From assembly GCA_009103225.1 (NCBI GenBank), contig RHPI01003508.1, positions 225,683 through 289,682 of the forward strand: a stretch of 64,000 nucleotides of DNA. The letters run 5' to 3'. The position numbers and the translations under genes are program-made. A model generated the notes under the pieces. It was given only the letters and a program-made list of their open reading frames with translations. It was not told the DNA's origin and searched no databases. Positions 2,321-62,849 of the stretch are shown piece after piece. How positions within the stretch are numbered: position 1 is the first letter of the stretch; each line of letters starts with the position of its first letter. Origin of the DNA: Chlorokybus atmophyticus (lineage: Eukaryota > Plantae > Mesostigma and Chlorokybus algae).

Positions 2321-3708
2321 GGTGCTGGCAAGACGTTCCTCTACAACACTTTGCTTGCATATGTTTGGAGCAGACGACGTGTTGCAATTGCTGTTGCGTC
2401 ATCCGGCATTGCGGCATAGCTACTCGAAGGTAATCAATGCACACGTCGATGTACTTTTCGATGAAATCACACGTATGCATTCAGCAAAATGAGTACAAGC
2501 ATGCTCACGTAAGTTGTGGTTGTGCAGGTGGAAAAACAGCTCATTCGAGATTCAAAATCCCCATCACTGGGCTGAGTGCAACCTCAATTTGCAACATTTC
2601 TGGAGGCAGCTCCTTAACGAAGCTGATGATCGCCGCGGAGCTAATTGTTTAGGACGAAGCTCCAATAATGAAGCTTTGCTTTGAGGCGGTTAACGGTACA
2701 CTGCAAGACATTATGAGCTCGGCGTATCTAGAAGCAGCGGATCTGCTTTTTAGAGGCAAGGTTGTTCAGTTGAGCGGCGACTTCCGACAAATCTTACCCG
2801 TTGTGCCGCGCGGAACACGTTCGCAAATTGTGCACGCGAGTTTAAAGTACTCCACGATGTGCAGCCGGATCAAGGTGATGAAGCTGCACATCAACATGCA
2901 TGTGCAGACGCTACAAGCTGCAGGAGAATCCGGAGTAGAGCAGCAAGAGTTCAGCAATTTTCTGCAGCACATCGATGATGGTTGTGAGCATGTGTTTTCT
3001 GACATAGGCGAGGAAATGGTGCGCTTGGACGCCGACCTTTGCTGTCAAGCTGGCAGTTTTGAAGGTTTGATCGAAGACATGTACGGTGAATTGCGCAATG
3101 AGCCGACACCGGAAGCTTTGGCCGAGTACGTCATCAACAGAGCAATCATCACGCCGAAAAACGCGACCGTTGACGAGATCAACACGCTAATTATGGCGCG
3201 TTGCAGCGATGGTACGTGCCGGTGGGGATCTAGATATAAATGCAGCTGCATATAAACATCTTGCATAAATTTTAAACATGCCACTTACCCGCCGCACTGC
3301 GCAGATGAGGAGAGGGTATACCGCAGTGCTGAATCTGTGCCACCAGAGAAGTAAGTAAACCATTACCCCTTTGAATATCTCGACAGCATCATGGTGTCTA
3401 GCTTACCTCCGCATGAACTGCGTCTCAAGATAGGTAGCCCGATCGTATTGCTGCGAAATATGCCTGATGGGCTGGCGAACGGCACGCGTCTTATTTGCAA
3501 AGGCCTCATGCAGCATGTGATCTATGCTAAAGTGGCTACGGGACCGGCAAAAGGCAGAAGAGTCTTCATCCCTCGACTAATGATCACGCCCTCAAATGTG
3601 GAGGGGATGCCGTTTACGTTGAGGCGTAGACAATTCCCAATACGCGCAGCTTTCGCCATGACCATCAACAAGTCTCAAGGCCAGACCTTGCGCAAGGTGG
3701 GAGTCTAG
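2321..3708 (+). pseudogene. Helitron PIF1-family helicase, intron-containing and inactivated by stops
   Basis: Motifs GAGKTFLYN, AVASSGIAA, GGKTAHSRFKIP, (W)DEAP, GDFRQILPVV, PPHELRLKIGSPIVLLRN, NGTRL and FPIRAAFAMTINKSQGQTL. In-frame TAG at 2417 and 2650. Confidence 0.92.
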
Positions 3709-5295: not shown

Positions 5296-6549
5296 AGGGG
5301 ATTAAGGCAGATCCAAGGGCAAAACACTTCTGGGGCGGCTTGCCCTAGGATGGGCGCGCCAAGGCAGTTTTACCTTTGACCGCGTGACCTCCGCGGTCGC
5401 GGGGTGAGGATTGTTCGTGGCCCGGATTTAAAAAGCCGCGGGCAGACCGGTCGTGGTACGGCCGCAATCATGGCGACATGGGCTTGTAAGTCATTATGTG
5501 AAGTGCAAACAAGCAGGTGCAACTTGTGCCAAGAAGCAGGCAGACTCAAGATGCATCATGATTGCTTCGAGACATTGTTAACGATCGTGTGTATGCTAAG
5601 TTGTCGCAGTTGCATTTGAGCAATTAGCCAACCACACTCAGCAAAGCACACGCACACGCACAAAGCACATGATGAGAGCATCTGGCGAACAAGCACGCTA
5701 CATGCAAAAAGGGCCTAACCAGGATTCTTCCAACTCAGGTGTTTGATGTGTGTGCAATCATATGAGTTACACCACTTCCGATAAGCATCCCAATTAGGTT
5801 TGCAGTGTGTCATTGAAGCACACTTTATAATAATGTATATGAATGCAAAATCTGTAGCTCTGCAATCGGTGGTTATGATTCCTCTTGCATAATTGGTAAT
5901 TGAGGCAATGATTCGTAATATGACGAAGTTGATATATTTAAGGTCGCACAAATTCCTCACATTTGTTGTCATAATAACGATTATAACTCAAAAGATGATG
6001 AATGATTTAATCCATCAACACTTTTTTGTTTTTGTTTACCACCACAAAGGAAGACCTTGACATCGTAAACACAGTATGTTTGCATACATTCAACATGCTT
6101 GTACATACAACTCGTGCGTCCAACTAAACGCCAGGCTTGTCGGTTGTGGTGATGTAAGTGTATCCTTCATCATAACAATAACTGATATATGGACAATTAA
6201 AAAAAGTTGGCATTAAAATAAATGATTGAAACTTCACACGAGCGCAATGTTGCGATTGATATTCGCATACTTTGCAAACACCTGCACTTCATAACTATTG
6301 CTGTTGTGCACTGATTGAGAATTGTAGTTGGAACTGTAACATGAGAATAGGCACACGTGTTCACCCCGCTTAGCATGCAGTCAAGTACACATGACATGAC
6401 CATCAATCACACATTCGGTATTTCATTACATGTAACATGCAAAGTGTCAGCACCTATTTCCTTCACACACATCCATTCACCAAAACCCCACGTTCTTATC
6501 TGACTACCGCCCAACAAAACATGATGTCTCAGGTATGTCTGCCAGATCA

Positions 6550-8344
6550 CTAATGGAATATGTTATACACCCTACCCAACCCTACGGGAACATATTCAAA
6601 CATCGGGATACTATTGTCTGTAGTCAGGACATAACAACTTGCGGTGACAGCAGAGCTTGTGTTGGGAAGCTCGAAGCTGAAAAACTGGTTCGCTCCCAAC
6701 CTGGCCTCAGAACGGAACAACTCTCGATAGCGACGGGTAACAGGTATGGTAGCTGTAACACCTGCCAACCCAACGCCAACAGATAGCTCCGCCATTTCCA
6801 TGCGGTGTCCATAGTTGACATGCACCAGGATAGCGTTGTCGGTTGTCGATAAGTTCCAAAAGCCAACTGTCTTGTTCCTCTCCTTGCGTTGCGACTCATC
6901 TTCCTGAAGATGCACGATGTAGTCTGCAAAACAACAACTCTTTGCCACGAAAACAACTCAATACGGTGTCTATACCTTGAGCACATCTGACCGAGCAGGT
7001 ACAGCAGCCGTGACATTCTCCCACCTCTCCAACAATGTATAGTAACGTTGCAATAACTTTTGATATAAGTCAGAGTCCTTGTCAACCTGTAAGATATTGC
7101 GGGTTGTTATAAAAATTCTCACACATATAGGCGATATATAACATATAGTATCCTTACCTTCCCATGTTCAAGAGCAATGAACAGAAATTTGTACACTGGC
7201 CACAGCTCCATCTGTCCATCCACATTGTGCAAAAAGCGTTTGAGTGGTGTATGGGGCAACGTCAAGCTCTTCAGCCACTCCACTACACCGCTGTGTCCAT
7301 GCGTCAACATATGCATATTTCCACCTTCCACCTTGGTATGGAAGTTCTGTTTGTCAAGCGATTGCAAGTTGTCAACTGCATGCTCTCCATGAACCTGAAA
7401 CCCTGCTTCAGCGATGGCAGCTTCCATTTGCACCCTGCCTTCAGTTTGGAGCTCACGTTGACGTCTGCTCGAGTTGCTCAACTCTTCTGCAGCACCTGTT
7501 ACCTTGCCTCCGAGGTACACTGAGGATACAAAATACAGACCCGTCTGTGCCAGAAACCTGCGAGTCAAAACGAGCTGCTTAGAATCGTTTGGAGATCAAC
7601 AGGTGTCCGCATCAACGGTAAGAGATGATTCTCACCTTTTGATGGAATCATCTGCCTCATGTAGATTGTCAAGGTTGTCCGGTAAAAATCTGACAGCAGT
7701 GTCCAGAAACAAGTCATTGATAGGCAATTGTTCCTCTCGTAGCCGTAACTTAAGGGAATTAGCCTCAACATATAAGTTCTTGTCGCGAGTCCTGCTGGAA
7801 GATGACTTGAACGACTTCAAAACTGAGCCCAACTTGCCTCCGATAGGAACCACTGAACCAACTGTGGTAGCTGCCAGCTCACTTTGAGCTGTGCTGTTGC
7901 GCGTGCGACTCGAGACCGAGCTGCTGTCACCCTTCGTGCAGGTCACGTCACTGATGTTGCTCACAGTCAACCAATTGGGGTGCTTGAAACTGCCTCTGCC
8001 TTGGAAGGAAGTAATCTGCATTTCGTTTTGAGCTGCATGAAACGGAGCTGTTTTCACCCGTGGAATTGCCCCTTGCAGAGTAGCCTCAAACCCAGGGTAA
8101 AAGCTTGGGTCAAGTTCCTGAACCAGCAACAAACTTTAGGGGTAACACAAGTTCGACACACCTTTATAAGTGTGTACAGGCATACGTTCGGTATGTTGTT
8201 GTCGACTGGTAGAGGCTGGATTGTGTTTGCAGCCTGAATAAGCATCGGGGTTTCATTCTTTGGCCTACGAATCAGGTTCAGCACTCTACCCCAGCGTGTA
8301 CGTGGGTTGGGTGCGTCTGTCCGAGCTTGCTGTTGTTGTTGTTG

Positions 8345-8375
<31 letters not shown>

Positions 8376-8434
8376 TGTTGTTGTTGCTGTTCACGAGAAC
8401 CTTCTGCCTCAAGTCGACCTTGTTGCTCAGCCAT
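6550..8434 (-). CDS. MACPF/perforin-like protein with N-terminal polyQ and a separate C-terminal domain
   Basis: Exons 8434-8186, 8117-7636, 7557-7158 and 7086-6976 join in frame through canonical GT-AG sites. The joined sequence LPINDLFLDTAVRFLP…IKRFLAQTGLYFVSSVYLGGKV resembles the MACPF signature (Y/W-G-T-H-F/Y-x6-GG), and EGG…EWLKSL…P…LWPVYKFL matches the end of the domain. The phase of the last exon (to TAG at 6550) is unresolved. Confidence 0.72.
8325..8390 (-). repeat. (CAA/CAG)n tract encoding ~21 Gln in exon 1 of the MACPF-like gene
   Basis: Direct reading of the sequence. Confidence 0.95.
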
Positions 8435-9741
8435 TCTCCCACTGATCTGTGTAAAGTCCGACTGGACTCTCCCAGCTACAGGTCAGCGAAAACAGGGAGA
8501 CAATTATCGCCCCTCAAATTGTCTCCAAAATCCCGCCTACACACTCGCACACACAGATGCATACTGAGTCGCCAGCACAGCGTTTACACCACATGCGAAC
8601 ATGCTACCACTCCACAGCAACACTCACGCACACAGCTGCACATAAGCATCCAACACAGTCAAACAAACAACGGCACACGTGAGCACCCAGCACAGCCAGC
8701 GCCTGGTTACACTCAGGTTGGTTGAGTTCCTATAACCTATAGCCCGTCCTATATTCTATCCAACATACCAAGTTACACTTCGCGTTGGTCGTGTTCCACA
8801 CAACTGCACACTGAACCAACAAGCACGGCATCAGCCAGGACATGCAAACATGCCACTGCTGCCGCAGCAATACTGACGGATAGCGCGCGTGCGCACGCGC
8901 ACACACACATGACTAACACACAGCTGCACGCCTGAGCATTTAACACATGCGAACAATGCACAGCAACAACCACCCGCAACACTCACAGCAAGCGGACATG
9001 AGCACAGCGCAGCGTGCGCTGCGCTGTGCTGTGCTGGCTGCTGTAGTATTGCGCCTGTTTGAAGACGCCCCAGAAGCGACTAACAAAGCATGCGTCCCGC
9101 CGCCGCCGCTGGCCCGTCGTGCCTGAATGTCACCCGACAATAACACCACCCGATTACTGCCGTCACTTGTCTGAATGTCACTACTGCCGGCAATCGCCGT
9201 CGACGCACAGCGTCCCGACCAGCCCAACAAACCCCACGCGTCGACGGCGACCAGGCAGCCGACAGCCGTCACCTGTCATCGACCCAGCTGAGAGCCCGTG
9301 CAGCCATGACAAAGGCCAGTCAGGCTGAACTGAACGCATTCAGCCGAACTGAAGCCGCCACGATGGATTTTGTCAGCCGACTGTGTTCAGTCGGCACAGC
9401 CATGCCTCTCGCGGGTTCGCTGAACCAAAGGCGCGCGTGTAATTCAAATCTACAAAACCTAACTACACTTAAGACTTTCGCGCCTAGTCCTGGTTCTGGT
9501 TGTTGCTGGTGGCAGTGGCAGAGGCGTCGGTGGCGGCCGGCGGCGGCGGCGACCACGCTGGTCGTCAGCCTGCTTAGGTTAAGGTGTCAGCTACTACTCA
9601 CTTGCAAGTAGTAATTGGTAAAGACAAGCTGTATGTGGGTGTTGTATACATACAGGAGTGACTGACTCTGTTGCAACTAGTAACGTCTGGGTGCATGGCG
9701 TTGAGTGCGTGCGTTTCCTCAGATGCAATGTGCATTAGGAG

Positions 9742-10240
9742 ATGGCTGAAGACGATATGTATGAATTGCCCAAATGGTCTGATGATGAGGATGATGCGGA
9801 GGTAGGCTCAACCGTGGCAAGTCATGCCGTGCATGCATGCCTGCAATGCTTTGTAGTGCATTGTAGTGCATCTGTAGGTAGCAATTGCAACGCTTCTGCA
9901 GCAGTTCAGCCTTCGACTGGGTGTTGTGCATGCAGGACCGCCTGCGCGACAGCAACATTGATCAGCTGGACGACATGGGGACGCCAACTCAGCCTGCCAC
10001 ACCTCATGTGTTTGAAGTTGGTGGCATCCAGACCCCTGCCACAGCCTTGTCTCAGTCAGGGGTATGTTACGTGTGCATAACGTCCACAAGTGTCACACAT
10101 ACAGGATGAATGTTGCCAAGGCACAAATGCATAGTTGTGTGTGTATGCGTGTGTGCATGTGCGAGCGCGTGTGCGCACACGTGTGTGTGTGTGCGTGCGC
10201 GCGCGCGCGTGCTTGCGCGCACGCGCGTGCGTGTGCGTGA

Positions 10241-10284
<44 letters not shown>

Positions 10285-11902
10285 ACCTGATGGCATATGC
10301 ATGTGGACATACGACTGAGTAATGCTCGGCTATGTAGTAACTGAGTTGCAGCAATGTTGATTTGTTGTTGTTGGCTTGAGTGCAGGCAGCGTCCACCTTA
10401 TTCATGCCAGGCGTTCGGCCTGCAGTGCAGTTTCCTTTCAACATGCCACTCAACTTCGCACCACCAAATGTTCCATTGCTAGCTCCCGCACAGACGCCGC
10501 CAGCCCCACAAATGCCGTCTGTTTCACCACCGCCTATGCCTGCACAGGCTGCTCCGGCGCCACAAGCGACATCTGTTCCACAACCGCCTATGCATGCACA
10601 GGCTCCAGCGCCACAAGCGGCAGTGCAAACACAACCAGCACATGAAGTTGATGCAATGGAAGTAGAGGTGTGTAAGGTCGGAGGATCATGGGCTTGCAGC
10701 TGCTGATGCATGTATGAAAGTTAATGATTTGTAGTATGTCCTGTTTGTGCGCGGGTGGTGGGTCACTCTTGTTGTTGTTGTGCTATGCGTAACTGAAAAT
10801 GTGTTGATGTAAACTCAACACATGTTGCTTGCGCAGGAGTTGAGGAATGGCAGTGGCATAGTATGGACTGACGCGCTGGTCCGGAAGCTTTTTCTAGCAG
10901 AGAAGCAAGTCACGGCAGTTATTGCCGAGGCGAATGCACAGAGCAAGACCAAAACTGCTGGCAAGTGGGAGCAAATCTATGAGATGATGAAGCCCACACC
11001 CTACACAGTCAAACAATGGCTGAACGCATACGACTACTTAAAGAAGAAGTACACGGTATGTTTGTCTTGCCCTTGTTGATGATATATATGTGTGTGCATG
11101 GATGTTATTGGCTTGTGAGCTAATGCTGTGTTGCTATGCGCACAGAAGTACAACTCATCCGGGGGGCAAGCAAGTGGGCAAGGCCAAGAAGCTGGTCAAG
11201 TTCAACTTGACCAGCTTCTTGCGGTCCAGAAGTTCTCGCAAAACAGGCGCACCTCTCAAGAAGCCCAAATACTATGACATTGTCCATGAGATTATGAAGA
11301 CCAAGGCCTCAGCCAACCCAAGCTTCACTGTCTCTTCCATGCCATCAACAGATGGCAACTTCTATAGCAAGAGAGACATGGGCTCTGTGCCAGTTCCATC
11401 TCGCTCCAGCAGCAAGCGAGCTGCCACGCCCTCCAGCTCCTACATCGGTAGTGAAAGAGTTGACTTCACATAGGAAGATCCATTGGGCACGGAGGAGCAC
11501 TTGCCCACCTTTGACGCTATGGACAGTGAGGTTGAAGGGGAGGTGAAGAAAAAGGGTGTGAAGAAAGAGGACCCTTCAGAAGTGACTTCTCCATCCCGCC
11601 AACGAAGTCACAAGCGCAACCGTCCAACCGGCAGTGTAGCCTCTGAATTGAAAGAGCTGCGTGAGCGGACCGTGACCTTCATGGACGAGAGTCAGGTGCT
11701 GAATCAAACCATGTGCCAGGTGGCGGCTGATACAAAGACGCTTGTTGAGCACTCGAAGGCAATGGTAGAGGCGGTGGTCGCCAGCAATGACCATCACAAG
11801 GCAGTGAAGGCTAACCGTGATAAGCGCCATGCCGAGTCGCTAAGTGCAGCCAAGGACTTTAATGATCGCTTTCTAACAATCTTAAAACGCGGTTTTTATT
11901 AA
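9742..11902 (+). CDS. Harbinger Myb/SANT (trihelix-like) DNA-binding protein, multi-exon, probably damaged
   Basis: Acidic N-terminus, Pro/Ala-rich exon, then WTDALVRKL…KWEQIYEMM…TVKQWLNAYDYLKKKY, TGAPLKKPKYYDIVHEI and a coiled-coil-like C-terminus. In-frame TAG at 11471-11473 and a phase problem near 11150. Confidence 0.7.
10130..10285. repeat. (GT)n/(GC)n microsatellite within an intron
   Basis: Direct reading of the sequence. Confidence 0.95.
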
Positions 11903-12363: not shown

Positions 12364-13925
12364 TTAACGGATCAAGTACTCAGCTATCAAGTCCCGTTTC
12401 AGTTTTGCACCACCAGCTGCCATGTTGGAGCCTAAGGGCACCCCGGTCTGTGCCTGCAAGTTCAGTAGGCGGATGCGCTTTGCTGCTCGCCGCCGTTCAC
12501 GCCGCGACACCACCACCTCGTGCCTCCTCTCATTGTGCAGTTGGACGACATTGTGCATTATGGCAGTAGCTGTAATGATGAGACATGCAAATCGAGTCTT
12601 CACCTGTGAATGCATGCGTCAGCTGCGCATGCACATGCACATGTATCACGTTCTTATTCATATTTGCAAGAGAAGTTGCTGCCAGCAATTATATGTTAAC
12701 TCACCTTGTAAAGCAGGACACGCCAGGTGTTCTTCCACAAGCCAATGGTTTGCTCGATAGCTATGCGTGTCGCCGACTGCATGTAGTTGTATACCTCTTG
12801 CTTAGGAGGTAAGTGGTTGCCGTCGTACGGAGTCATGATCTTGGTCGTCAAAGGGTAGGCAGCATCTCCAACCAAGTACCCCATTGAAGGACGTTCGTGA
12901 TCCAGCAAGTACTGGCTAACCGGTGCAAAGTTGAACACAGTAGAGTCGTGATTGCAACCAGCACAGCCGACGTGCAGATTCGTGATGTTGAATTTGTCAT
13001 TACAAATAACCAAGCAATTGGTGGAGTAAAACTTCTTATAATTGCGATAGCTCTCGTCTTTTTCTTGTATCTTCACATGGGTGCCATCCACCGATCCGAC
13101 GCAGCCCTTCATACCGTTAGTATGGGTTGTGTAGCCACGCATTTCAAAGCCAGACTGAATGGCCGCCACACCCCTTCGCCCAGCAGGACGTCCCAGTGCA
13201 GCAGGCCACACCGGCCCCTCTAGAAACCCAACAGGAGCAGCTTGATCAGCCATCCACACGCATATACAATTGCCTTAAACAACATGCATGAAAGCAGCAC
13301 ATCAACATTAATACCTAATAAAATGATCCATCACGAGCTGCACAATGGCGCCACATACGATGGGAACCTCCTGAGCAATGGTGGAGATGCCAAGATTGAA
13401 TAACTCACTAACTGCAGCGAAGTCAGCTCCAGTAGCTAGGTAATAAAGCACTGCAGCTACCCGGCGCTCAAGTGTGATGGCTTTGACCCAACGAGAATCC
13501 TCTACTTCTACATCAGCACGGATGGCCTCACACACAAGCTCATATACTGCGCGCTCCAACCTAAAGTGTTTTACAAACCTCTCCTCACTAAATTGAGGCA
13601 CCCAGTGATCCCACCAGAGCTTATGTCTAAGCAAGGACTGCACACGAAGACGCAAAGGATCAGCACCCACTGCCATCATGCACGTCTGACTGGATGATGA
13701 TAATTGCGTGAACAACATCAGCAACACCTGCACAACCACAACCAGAACACTACTAGCCATAGCGACAAGCATTCTATGCTGCTGCATAACTACATCATAT
13801 GTTGCATCGTCCAGCAACTCCTTCTTCTGACGCATTGTTAAGAGCATTGCATTATGCCGCTGCAACAGCATCTGGATCAGACGCATCTGTGCAAGTAGAG
13901 CACGCACACCTACACACAATGACAC
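12364..13925 (-). CDS. Harbinger DDE transposase (HARBI1/ALP1-like), spliced
   Basis: N-terminal HTH region (FVKHFRLERAVY…ITLERRVAAVLYYLATG…LFNLGIST) and catalytic residues in SVDGTH, HDSTVF, LVGDAAYP and RIAIEQTIGLWKNTWRVL. The AAG|GT…CAG|GTG junction is in frame. The first junction and the start codon are uncertain. Confidence 0.9.
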
Positions 13926-58500: not shown

Positions 58501-60630
58501 CCAGGCCAGCGTCAGCGGTGTTATCGATCATGGTAGTGTTACACTACCAAGATGGCGAGTGGTGGCTGGGGATAGGCAGGTGTGGCGATGACTCGCCTTT
58601 TCTTTTCGCTCTCGCTACCTCAGCAGCACACACATCACAATTTTGCTAGGCGTTGAGGCACAATTTGCAGCTTTGATATTGTCAGCTGTTCTTGGACACC
58701 TCTCTACAGCTGTGTTGCTGGTCATGTCAATAAAATAGTTGTCAACCATTGTTTGCCAGCATACACAACACAGCGGTGCTACAGTCAGCTGCCTTTGACT
58801 CAACTGTAGTACAGTTTGGCAGCTTTTATGGCTGGCCAACTGTACTACACCTAGAGTGGCAGCTACCAGTAGCACCGCTGCTACGCAATAGCGGCCACAT
58901 CACAACTGCTGTTGGAATGAAGATTTGTGCATGCGAGACAGATTTGATGGGTGCGATACACACTGCGACTAAAACGGTAGCCGTACTGCGTTCAACGCAG
59001 TTGCACGCGCAAATTGCAGTGCAACGCTGCAGCGGGTTTATAACGAGGGGATTTCGCGGTTAACCGGGCACAGGCAAGCTACCCTCGTGTGCTGCTGCTA
59101 CCTTGGTGTCAAGGGCATGCTGGTGTTTGAAAAAACATGCAGCATGCCTGTCCGACGGTGACTAAGGCGGTCGGACACTAAGGCGCCGCCTCGGCGTACA
59201 TAAGCAGTATAGCTTAGTTTCAAGTACATAGGACGGAGACTAATGTGCACACAGTATAGCAGCCACTTACAACACCAATCAGCGGCAACAGTGTCTCAGC
59301 CCCAAGCATGCACACCCACAGGCATGCAGACACTACAAACCACCACCACGCTTGCAAGAGGCTGCTGAGAAACATGCCACGCTACGCTTAACCCAACAAG
59401 CCCAGTTATTGCAAGCAACGCCTCAACCTGTCCATGATATGTCCATGAGATGAAGACTGCTCCTCACCCAGCTGTGGCATGCTCACCGCAGCGGCACGTT
59501 GTCCACCCCGACTGCCCACGCTTGCTTGCTTCTGAGGCATGGCATGGCATGGTGCGGCCCAAGCTCGTGCGGAACAGACAAAAGCGACACACTAGCCAGC
59601 GACAAGTTACTAAGTTAGTGACTCATACCAACGCCACACGCACTGACGGCTTGCACAAACGCCGCAGCGCAGCGCTTTGTTGTCGCCTGATTATCAGTTT
59701 GGAGTTGTTAATCGTATTCCTATTTGGGACACATTCTACGTGCCCAATCAAGCAGCGCAGCAAACATAACGGCTGTAATCATTGCCCAACCGACAATCAT
59801 GATGCGATACACAGCCGTTTAAGGGACTTACGCCGCCATTGTATCATACAATTTGTATGTGGGACTTACAGCCATAATAGCGGGTTTGTTCCTCTGTTAT
59901 AAGAATAATGTTGCACTTGCAATATATCATTCCATCAATGGGTTTGTTCTCTTCGTGCTTATCGTCCACAAGTTTTCGTGCAATAAGAGAGGGTTTTACG
60001 TGTTGGTATGAAGCTTGCTAAAATGCCTATTAGAAGAAACATAAAACATTGCACTTTTAATTGTAAATTTATTTGACTTTTTTAGCTACTAACTCTTGGC
60101 CACAAAAGCGCTCCATTATCTTATTGTGTGTGACGTCAGCGGCTTGATTCTCAAGCATTAAATTTATGGATGAAGATAACCTGTACCTACGAGAAAGTGT
60201 ACCTTCATTGACATAAGACACTACTGATATCGAACATTTATATAACACGTGTTCTTGCAACCACACAGGTGGCAAGCATGACATCATTACTTGTACAATA
60301 TTGCATTGTAGCTACTACTAGTACTAGGATTACTGCTGAGAAGTGCTCTCCGCAGATAGCACGCGACCACATCATCATGCCTTTTATTTATTTATTGGCC
60401 ACGTTCATCATGATGATGGTAGCTGTGACGTTGAGGGCAAACCGCAGCACCTCGACAACCCTCCCCCACCCCTCTCTGCTGCCCAGACGCATACACATGC
60501 ATACGTGTGCACCCAGCTACCCACATATCCACATGACCCACGCGCCCACGCCTGCGCCTGTGCCAACGCCCCAATACGCGCACCTAGACCCAATACACGC
60601 ACGCACAACGGCTCGAGCACGCCCATCCCC

Positions 60631-61308
60631 NNNNNNNNNNNNNNNNNNNNNNNNNNNNNNNNNNNNNNNNNNNNNNNNNNNNNNNNNNNNNNNNNNNNNN
60701 NNNNNNNNNNNNNNNNNNNNNNNNNNNNNNNNNNNNNNNNNNNNNNNNNNNNNNNNNNNNNNNNNNNNNNNNNNNNNNNNNNNNNNNNNNNNNNNNNNNN
60801 NNNNNNNNNNNNNNNNNNNNNNNNNNNNNNNNNNNNNNNNNNNNNNNNNNNNNNNNNNNNNNNNNNNNNNNNNNNNNNNNNNNNNNNNNNNNNNNNNNNN
60901 NNNNNNNNNNNNNNNNNNNNNNNNNNNNNNNNNNNNNNNNNNNNNNNNNNNNNNNNNNNNNNNNNNNNNNNNNNNNNNNNNNNNNNNNNNNNNNNNNNNN
61001 NNNNNNNNNNNNNNNNNNNNNNNNNNNNNNNNNNNNNNNNNNNNNNNNNNNNNNNNNNNNNNNNNNNNNNNNNNNNNNNNNNNNNNNNNNNNNNNNNNNN
61101 NNNNNNNNNNNNNNNNNNNNNNNNNNNNNNNNNNNNNNNNNNNNNNNNNNNNNNNNNNNNNNNNNNNNNNNNNNNNNNNNNNNNNNNNNNNNNNNNNNNN
61201 NNNNNNNNNNNNNNNNNNNNNNNNNNNNNNNNNNNNNNNNNNNNNNNNNNNNNNNNNNNNNNNNNNNNNNNNNNNNNNNNNNNNNNNNNNNNNNNNNNNN
61301 NNNNNNNN
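60631..61308. other. Assembly gap (N run); smaller gaps at ~28877-28952 and ~62489-62557, all flanked by poly-C
   Basis: Direct reading of the sequence. Confidence 0.98.
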
Positions 61309-62849
61309 CCCCCACCCCCCGGCCGCGCCCACGCTTTTCTACACAGCTGCATACTTGCGCATGCGCATGCCCCCGCGCTCCTCCCTGGCATACACACACA
61401 GCCACACCGACAGACACGCACGCATCCCCCAATGTGATGCGTCTCTTTGGTACAGCCAGTATGTTCCTGCATGCGTGCGGGCATGGTGCGGCAAGAATAC
61501 ATGAACATTGCCGTTCCCTGCGGATCCCGGGATTACCTCACCGTGCAGGTGAGCGGTGGTGCGGTGGTGGCGAGCCATGCAATCCCTGTAGATTGCGCGT
61601 ATGCGCGGTGCGTGCGCGTGCACCAGATGCTGTGCACTCACCCCAGATGCCCAGGTGCGACCAGACACACAGTTGGCATGTACGCGTCCGTGCCACCCAC
61701 TGCAGCATGCGTGTCATAAGCAATAGTAAGGTGAGAACAGGTAGCCTGCACCGTCGCACCGTGCACAAGGCAGAACCAACAACAACGGCTGAGACCTCAG
61801 TCCCACTGATACAGTGACAGTATATCGTGGTTGATCACACTGACTCCAGATGCACGCATGCACACGCACCAGCAGTTGGAGCGAAACAATAGCAGGACGG
61901 CCATCAGCTTGCAGTCTGATGACGCAACGGCCTGGTAGCAGCTGCTCTTGCCTTCGCACTGTGTGCTATTGGCGCACGCTAAGCTGCGCCTCTCGTACGT
62001 GATGTTGCCTTTGGAACGGTTGCATTCGTCCATTGTAGGTCAACATGGCCATGGCGAGCTCAGGGTTTGTACCTCGCAGCACGCTTGCATGCATCCGCCT
62101 TGAGATGACAAAGCCGTGGCGGCAATGCCGTGTTGCAGTCGGCTGGGCCTCTTGTCTGCATGTGAGAGCGCCGCTCTTGGAGCTCAAAGCTCTTTACCCC
62201 TGCATGGATGTTGCACAAAACAATGCCATGATGAGAATGGAGGCCTCTCACCAGATGCTGTGGTACTAGTCGTAACACTGACTTATACTGCTGCTTGTAC
62301 CGTCCATCACTACTAGTAGTAACACTGGTAGTAGCGGTACTACTGTTACGACGAATAGTCCTGATCCTAGCAGTACTAGTTCTAGTATTACTAGCACTAC
62401 AACGAGCCAGCGGACGTGCCGTGTGTTCCCCGCACTTGCGGAAGAGCTTTACAAGTGCAACTGCGCTTGCACACATATAACTCCCCCCNNNNNNNNNNNN
62501 NNNNNNNNNNNNNNNNNNNNNNNNNNNNNNNNNNNNNNNNNNNNNNNNNNNNNNNNNCCCCCCCCCCCCCCCCCCCCCCATCCCCTCTTTCCCCCCAACC
62601 GAACCCACACACACACACATCCTCTCTCTTTCTCTCAAACTCTCTGTCTTGATGTGTGCGTTCGTGCGCGCGTGGCAACTGCAGCGCTACGGCTACTAGC
62701 ACTTCTCACAGATCTACTGCTAGTAGTAGCACCTGCACGCTTGCGAAGTGGCCAAGGCGAGCTGGTCCTCCAGGATTACGGCTGGATGGTGTCACAGAAT
62801 CGTTGCGCAACAGACGCCCCAGCGACTCCTCCATGCCAAGTGACCAGGA

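Follow-up and report, generated by a model that had tools for sequence, protein, structure and literature searches.

A spliced and expressed gene for a probable, very divergent MACPF/perforin-like protein in the streptophyte alga Chlorokybus atmophyticus

The MACPF fold consists of a bent beta-sheet of four strands with two helical clusters, TMH1 and TMH2, at its flanks. The Mpf2Ba1/GNIP1Aa-type bacterial toxins (PDB 8b6u, 8b6v, 8b6w) are proteins of about 450-480 aa in which an N-terminal MACPF domain is followed by a beta-rich C-terminal module, and Mpf2Ba1 carries the signature G-S-H-F-x6-G-G. Pleurotolysin B, a fungal two-component MACPF pore former (PDB 4oej, 4v2t, 9do9), is leaderless, has the non-canonical signature G-H-V-F-x6-G-G and a beta-rich C-terminal region, and requires its aegerolysin partner PlyA for membrane binding. 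Perforin-1 and the apicomplexan PLP1 (PDB 7pag, 5oup) are secreted and follow the overall logic of a MACPF domain joined to a C-terminal membrane-binding beta domain, with C2 or APC-beta domains. Many MACPF proteins are not lytic, proposed examples being CAD1, NSL1 and MACP2 of land plants and astrotactin and BRINP of animals.

In land plants, the MACPF proteins (Arabidopsis CAD1, NSL1 and MACP2) possess a MACPF domain and no classical secretion signal, and roles in immunity and in the control of cell death have been proposed for them (PMC7460961, PMC9369274). Two surveys of the plant family, which drew on four chlorophyte genomes, reported no MACPF gene in algae and described the family as specific to land plants (PMC7460961, PMC10487776). 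No paper on MACPF genes of streptophyte algae, Chlorokybus included, emerged from full-text literature searches.

Chlorokybus atmophyticus (class Chlorokybophyceae, Streptophyta) belongs to the same lineage as the land plants. Within the window, i.e., the whole stretch of 64,000 nucleotides analysed here, a coding sequence on the minus strand (6550-8434) consists of five coding exons separated by four introns, every one of which is bounded by GT..AG. Three public runs from one organism and two studies contain this stretch, and their contigs were mapped to positions 5800-9200; X1 below is a run of study P1 (2021) and X2 a run of study P2 (2013). P0001 is the public protein model of the gene. 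The features are as follows.

8987-9133, minus strand: first exon of the 5′ UTR, from record 4 of the X1 contigs (joints 8535/8543>8986/8987; donor GTGAGT from 8986); its start lies possibly further upstream
8769-8810, minus strand: optional, alternatively spliced 5′ UTR exon, from X1 joints 8535>8768 and 8810>8987, in each of which the shorter side is only 26-29 nt
8186-8543, minus strand: remainder of the 5′ UTR and coding exon 1, with alternative acceptors at 8543 and 8536; coding part 8434-8186, 83 codons
about 8327-8389, minus strand: CAG/CAA repeat read from the sequence, encoding a run of 21 Gln; transcript contigs break here and leave 8321-8395 uncovered
7636-8117, minus strand: coding exon 2, with 160 codons and a further 2 nt, for the N-terminal half of the MACPF-like core
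7257-7781, minus strand: span of the match to Pfam PF01823 (P0001 133-281), placed through the exon map and taking in the intron 7558-7635
7158-7557, minus strand: coding exon 3, 1 nt followed by 133 codons; carries the signature, a TMH2-like stretch, the V-x-G-G of beta4 and the block EWLKSL...P
7506-7541, minus strand: degenerate MACPF signature G-L-Y-F-VSSVYL-G-G (P0001 G187-G198), aligned to the signatures of Mpf2Ba1 and pleurotolysin B
6976-7086, minus strand: coding exon 4, 37 codons; helical linker with a conserved L-x-x-R-W-E/P
6550-6903, minus strand: coding exon 5, 117 codons and the stop codon; encodes the beta-rich C-terminal domain that family members have kept
6450-6549, minus strand: 3′ UTR, from contig ends at 6450 and 6457

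The exon map is supported by transcript contigs. Contigs of both X1 and X2 skip exactly 6904-6975, 7087-7157 and 7558-7635, and those of X1 also skip 8118-8185; the first three joints are thus carried by independent contigs of X2. A contig of 1620 nt from X1 aligns in raw form to 6450-6902, 6975-7084, 7156-7555, 7634-8116 and 8185-8320, and its joints equal the four predicted introns once the shifts reported by the aligner are applied. The RNA label of the runs is a guess, and intron-less contigs with gaps bounded by GT..AG in two studies are what mRNA gives. Short X1 contigs extend the first 5′ UTR exon to at least 9133. The start codon is the ATG at 8434-8432, which is the first possible start since an in-frame stop (TGA, 8485-8483) is read upstream in the sequence. 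The codon of an Arg is split between exons 2 and 3. For exon 5, the acceptor lies at 6904/6903 and not at the nearer AG at 6924, because only the former closes the frame. The earlier note on this DNA had placed the gene correctly on the minus strand between 8434 and 6550, with four exons where there are in fact five coding exons and four introns; its 7636>7557 junction is borne out by the spliced contigs of both studies, and the exon 4-5 junction, for which it proposed a transcript check, is fixed at 6976>6903. This is an expressed and correctly spliced nuclear gene of Chlorokybus, transcribed in ordinary cultures in two studies.

From Met64 onwards, the exon translations equal, residue for residue to the stop, the 468-aa protein P0001 (eukprot jgi/Chlat1/8701/Chrsp88S08069, Chlorokybus atmophyticus), which has no precomputed Pfam domain. 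The product is about 531 aa if counted from Met1 and 468 aa if translation begins at Met64. Exons were searched one at a time, while full-length analyses were performed on P0001, which omits the first 63 residues; these residues, with the 21-Gln run, were examined only within the exon 1 piece. No signal peptide or transmembrane helix was found, the maximal Kyte-Doolittle mean over 19 residues being 1.46 (in the C-terminal domain) and, in exon 1, 0.23. The predicted layout comprises a polyQ N-terminus, a very divergent MACPF/perforin-type domain (P0001 about 20-315), a short linker of helical character and, as the tail, a beta-rich domain of about 117 aa. Public annotation already includes the gene, as a model without a name, and what is new is the MACPF assignment, the small family that shares an intron with it and the unmatched tail domain.

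The MACPF assignment is derived from three independent methods that agree. When P0001 was compared to Pfam, MACPF was matched with 21.4 bits (E 3.1e-4; profile positions 21-181 of 214), which misses the gathering cut-off of 21.5 by 0.1 bit, and no family competed with it. Land-plant MACPFs pass the Pfam cut-off easily, whereas the Chlorokybus protein is sub-threshold. Exon 3, the best conserved exon among family members, also has MACPF as its top Pfam match when searched alone (E 0.033, 14.7 bits), which is the sole meaningful Pfam result of the exon-wise searches. Similarly, MACPF is the top and only Pfam match of the relative P0002 (E 0.05).

Comparison with solved structures points in the same direction. 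In a phmmer search of the PDB with P0001, Mpf2Ba1 ranked first with an E-value of 0.04. A family profile, A4, was constructed from P0001 1-320 together with the segments of four relatives that correspond to exons 2 and 3, and was run against 177,635 PDB sequences. The top 11 matches were all MACPF proteins and represent four subfamilies aligned in one register: Mpf2Ba1 (E 6.4e-5), pleurotolysin B (3.1e-4 to 9e-3), TgPLP1 (0.011) and perforin-1 (0.039). The alignments cover the helix that precedes the signature, the G-x-x-F-x6-G-G, the next 55 residues or so (TMH2) and the V-x-G-G (beta4). The best E-value against the PDB therefore improved a thousand-fold, from 0.04 with P0001 alone to 6e-5 with the family profile, and such a gain on adding relatives fits the expectation for true homology. 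Exon 3 alone gave no phmmer match in the PDB. A profile of exon 2, which encodes the N-terminal half of the core, matched nothing there either, so that it is the second half of the MACPF domain that carries the homology. The content of exon 2 includes a conserved PGF, a P-x-W-L-x-V-S, a Ser/Thr-rich TMH1-like stretch, a beta2-like strand and an amphipathic helix. The signature itself reads T-G-L-Y-F-x6-G-G, with L-Y replacing the T/S-H of the canonical Y/W-G-T/S-H-F/Y-x6-G-G.

The third method is the weakest. The ESM Atlas neighbours of P0001 (0.90) are all MACPF/CDC clusters: 38 of 100 are MACPF and 19 are cholesterol-dependent cytolysins, in addition to MACPF-D2 clusters, and the best ten all belong to one clan; a third of shuffled proteins can also give ten neighbours of the same clan. 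The ESM recognition value of 1990 is below the level reached by 91% of proteins of known families. P0001 has no Pfam match to Thiol_cytolysin (PF01289), the family of the cholesterol-dependent cytolysins, or to their C-terminal undecapeptide domain, and clusters of these cytolysins appear only as ESM-feature neighbours, as expected for a shared superfamily. Structure prediction by AlphaFold2 on the shallow alignments A1 and A4 (6 and 9 rows) gave pLDDT values of 37.1 and 38.4 and unusable models, and a Foldseek search of the PDB with the second, low-confidence model (38.4) returned noise only. These low values are explained by a family alignment that is too shallow, i.e., a technical failure and not evidence against the fold. 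In the second model, the elements follow one another as strands, a helix, a strand (140-146), helices (155-193), a strand (200-204), helices (212-249) and a strand (253-257). Amphipathicity averaged over the family is of the beta type at 105-113 (TMH1-like), 137-145 and 213-225 (TMH2-like), and of the alpha type at 157-185, the helix before the signature. The predicted order of elements and the amphipathicity fit the MACPF topology, which they support weakly. Taken together, the sequence comparisons make it very probable that the Chlorokybus protein is homologous to MACPF.

The comparison with the closest described systems also delimits the likeness. The best solved-structure match, Mpf2Ba1, is aligned through the pre-signature helix, the G-x-H/Y-F-x6-G-G, the TMH2 stretch and the V-x-G-G, and it resembles the Chlorokybus protein in size and in its order of domains. 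However, only about 110 residues align, and the tail has no similarity, including to the beta-tripod families of Pfam. In further contrast to the toxin, the Chlorokybus gene is eukaryotic and bears introns, and it is not known to have an insecticidal or other activity. Pleurotolysin B, the second-best match, is likewise leaderless, non-canonical in its signature and beta-rich in its C-terminal region, but identity to it is low and confined to the second half of the MACPF domain; moreover, no aegerolysin-like gene adjoins the Chlorokybus gene in the window. Perforin-1 and PLP1 are matched weakly, although in register, and they are secreted proteins, while the Chlorokybus protein has no signal peptide and its tail is unrelated to theirs. 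A close relationship to the land-plant MACPFs (CAD1/NSL1) emerged neither when exon 3 was run by phmmer against 1.84 billion representatives nor in word searches.

This exhaustive phmmer search retrieved six proteins, namely P0001 itself (100% identical) and five relatives, which are exon-sized ORFs of 74-190 aa with 30-44% identity to exon 3, located on intron-bearing contigs of ENA or Logan metagenome assemblies. Contigs of the family include ERZ24794442, ERZ22826843, ERZ26867466, ERZ22827497 and ERZ5252230. No recognised MACPF protein, including plant MACPFs, was retrieved among the 1.84 billion representatives, nor was any bacterial or fungal protein at E<=1e-3. By tblastn, equivalents of exons 2, 3 and 4, and of exon 5 where the contig reaches it, were located in the same order on three of these contigs (L001, L003/L004 and L005). 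All four genes agree in the codon position and the phase of the intron between exons 2 and 3 (…A(A/C)|GT … AG|G TT…). The G-x-x-F-x6-G-G and V-x-G-G motifs are conserved in the family, with the G, the F, the spacing and the G-G present in all intact members. The T/S-H of the signature is missing in four of the five family members, and the L001 relative keeps the H (G-H-H-F). A further contig of 3.8x, L007, holds a copy that is 82-91% identical to that of L003 and likewise has GH125 as its neighbour; its exon 2 is interrupted by an in-frame stop and it reads Y-L-G-S-S instead of Y-L-G-G, which represents either decay or sequencing error. Scans of JGI metagenomes with the alignment A6 and with a single L003 exon brought no further relatives, word searches that started from P0001 or from profile A4 retrieved nothing but P0001 itself and fragments the size of an exon, a word search with exon 3 alone was empty, its length filter leaving out the full protein, and tblastn of the exons found no paralogue within the 64-kb window. 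Judging from these sequences, the family is real, eukaryotic, in that it shares an intron, and very small in current databases.

The C-terminal domain is part of what the family shares. It aligns over its full length in two relatives with 23-25% identity, with the common motifs T-V-x-F-x-N, A-R/T-L-G-x-x-Q-x-x-x-F-x-L/V-P, S-C and G-K/R-x-Y, a pattern that a functional targeting module would be expected to show. Searched by sequence only, the last 117-129 aa matched nothing in Pfam, NCBIfam, the PDB sequences or the ESM Atlas, a profile of the domain gave one chance-level match in the PDB (E 1), and a beta-tripod of the Mpf/GNIP1Aa type was not found in this segment by sequence. The earlier note had described a protein with a polyQ N-terminus, no signal peptide, a MACPF-like core with a variant signature and an unrecognised C-terminal domain, and this description holds: all the motifs that it quoted are present (FYPGFE, RFLAQTGLYFVSSVYLGGKV across a splice junction, EWLKSL and LWPVYKFL), exon 1 encodes the 21 Q and stays low in hydropathy, the core finds MACPF by Pfam, profile and Atlas neighbours alike, the G-L-Y-F-x6-G-G aligns with the signatures of Mpf2Ba1 and pleurotolysin B, and the tail is conserved in the family and otherwise unmatched.

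The best explanation appears to be a leaderless, very divergent MACPF protein with a pore-forming mechanism, to which we assign a probability of roughly 0.5. By analogy with known MACPF proteins, the C-terminal domain would dock the protein on a target membrane, a ligand or a receptor, after which the MACPF domains would oligomerise into a ring. Two stretches of about 55 residues beside the central sheet (TMH1, about P0001 78-138, and TMH2, about 203-255) would then refold into amphipathic beta-hairpins and insert as a beta-barrel pore. Since there is no secretion signal, the protein would act inside the cell or once the cell has lysed. The target could thus be an internal membrane, with a role in cell death or at an organelle, or an invader that the protein encounters in the cytosol or upon lysis; a function in cell death and a cytosolic location are what we infer here from analogy. 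Provided that the protein is a MACPF homologue, actual pore formation is slightly more probable than its absence.

A true MACPF homologue could also form no lytic pores and act as a membrane-associated regulator or signalling protein, with a repurposed domain and a relaxed or altered constraint on the signature. This is a serious possibility, at less than even odds. It draws on the same homology evidence as the pore former and accommodates the missing signal peptide and the loss of the T/S-H in most of the family; repurposed, non-lytic MACPFs are well documented, and expression in ordinary cultures of two studies is easier to reconcile with a non-toxic protein. Against it, both TMH-like stretches have the usual length and contain beta-amphipathic segments, the G-G hinge motifs are invariant, and pleurotolysin B, a proven pore former, also departs from the canonical T/S-H. 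Sequence by itself cannot separate the two readings.

It is improbable that the protein is not a MACPF at all, i.e., that it is a lineage-specific protein of another fold in which the G-x-x-F-x6-G-G and segments rich in Ser, Thr and Gln generate a chance similarity below threshold. The Pfam score under the cut-off, the exon 2 profile without a PDB match, the exon 3 search that retrieved no recognised MACPF among 1.84 billion representatives, the models with pLDDT of 37-38 and the shuffled proteins that in a third of cases can acquire ten Atlas neighbours of one clan would all be compatible with such a protein. However, Pfam, the PDB profile and the ESM Atlas point to one superfamily and to nothing else, the E-value fell from 0.04 to 6e-5 once relatives were added, and four distinct MACPF subfamilies were matched in the same register.

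The earlier note placed the gene among transposon relics, and a PIF1/Helitron-type helicase fragment (2668-3255, E 1.8e-21) and a DDE_Tnp_4 transposase (12696-13259, E 2.2e-26) do lie nearby; of its suggestion of a lineage-specific or acquired gene, the lineage restriction stands while acquisition is disfavoured by the shared intron position and phase and by the lack of a close bacterial or fungal relative among the 1.84 billion representatives. Horizontal transfer from a bacterium or a fungus would agree with the best PDB matches being bacterial Mpf2Ba1 and fungal pleurotolysin B, with the transposon-type neighbours and with a GC content marginally lower than that of the window (0.48 versus 0.50), but it is very unlikely given the four coding introns and the additional UTR introns, the three relatives on other eukaryote-like contigs with the same exon 2/3 intron position and phase and the later exons, the absence of any bacterial or fungal protein at E<=1e-3 in that search, and a PDB that holds no competing plant MACPF, so that the order of PDB matches says little about ancestry. 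The shared intron and C-terminal domain likewise argue against a recent transfer.

The gene thus represents an expressed, probable MACPF homologue in one of the earliest-branching streptophyte algae, which standard domain annotation missed by 0.1 bit and which carries no precomputed Pfam domain. As such a homologue, it would extend this pore-forming family to algae, which plant papers describe as devoid of MACPF. Its C-terminal domain would add to the range of MACPF targeting modules, and the gene does not amount to a new kind of system. A more speculative and rather doubtful proposal is that Chlorokybus and a few uncultured intron-bearing (probably algal) genomes possess a small and so far overlooked family of MACPF proteins that lack a leader and have a new targeting domain at the C-terminus, acting as intracellular pore-forming executioners of cell death or in defence against intracellular parasites or viruses. 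If true, the green lineage would have had perforin-type effectors of immunity or cell death before there were land plants, and these effectors would be independent of the CAD1/NSL1 clade. The gene offers a concrete candidate that can be cloned to find out whether perforin-type proteins serve algae in defence or cell death.

The open reading frame and the transcript contigs of the MACPF-like gene extend to the ATG at position 8434, upstream of the start of the public 468-aa JGI model P0001 (jgi/Chlat1/8701), whose first residue corresponds to Met64 (region 8243-8434). Initiation at this ATG would add 63 residues to the public model, including a run of 21 glutamines. The CAG/CAA repeat interrupts the transcriptome contigs, which may explain the shortness of P0001.

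Upstream of the coding sequence, alternative splicing was detected in the 5′ UTR (8536-9133, minus strand), with support limited to short contigs of a single public sequencing run (X1; study P1, 2021). These contigs define the following features:

8986, minus strand, single splice donor
8543 and 8536, minus strand, two alternative acceptors 8 nt apart
8769-8810, minus strand, optional small exon

The gene region is flanked by two transposon-derived elements, listed below with a long open reading frame located nearby:

2668-3255, plus strand, PIF1-like helicase fragment, a Helitron-type relic (E 1.8e-21)
12696-13925, minus strand, DDE_Tnp_4 (Harbinger/PIF-type) transposase ORF (E 2.2e-26)
10067-10711, minus strand, long ORF, largely translated simple repeat

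The last of these consists mainly of (CA/TG)n and GC-rich simple repeat in translation (THTHTH..., CGAGA...) and is probably not a gene. Elsewhere in the window, the GC content falls sharply to 0.35 at 60001-62000, the remainder ranging from 0.44 to 0.54.

A copy of the gene on the metagenome contig L007 (2961-5063) shares 82-91% identity with the relative on a second metagenome contig, L003. In the L007 copy, exon 2 is interrupted by an in-frame stop, and Y-L-G-S-S replaces the otherwise invariant Y-L-G-G. Because the coverage of this contig is 3.8x, the stop and the motif change may reflect either a pseudogene or an error. On both contigs, a GH125 gene lies downstream on the opposite strand, indicating conserved synteny.
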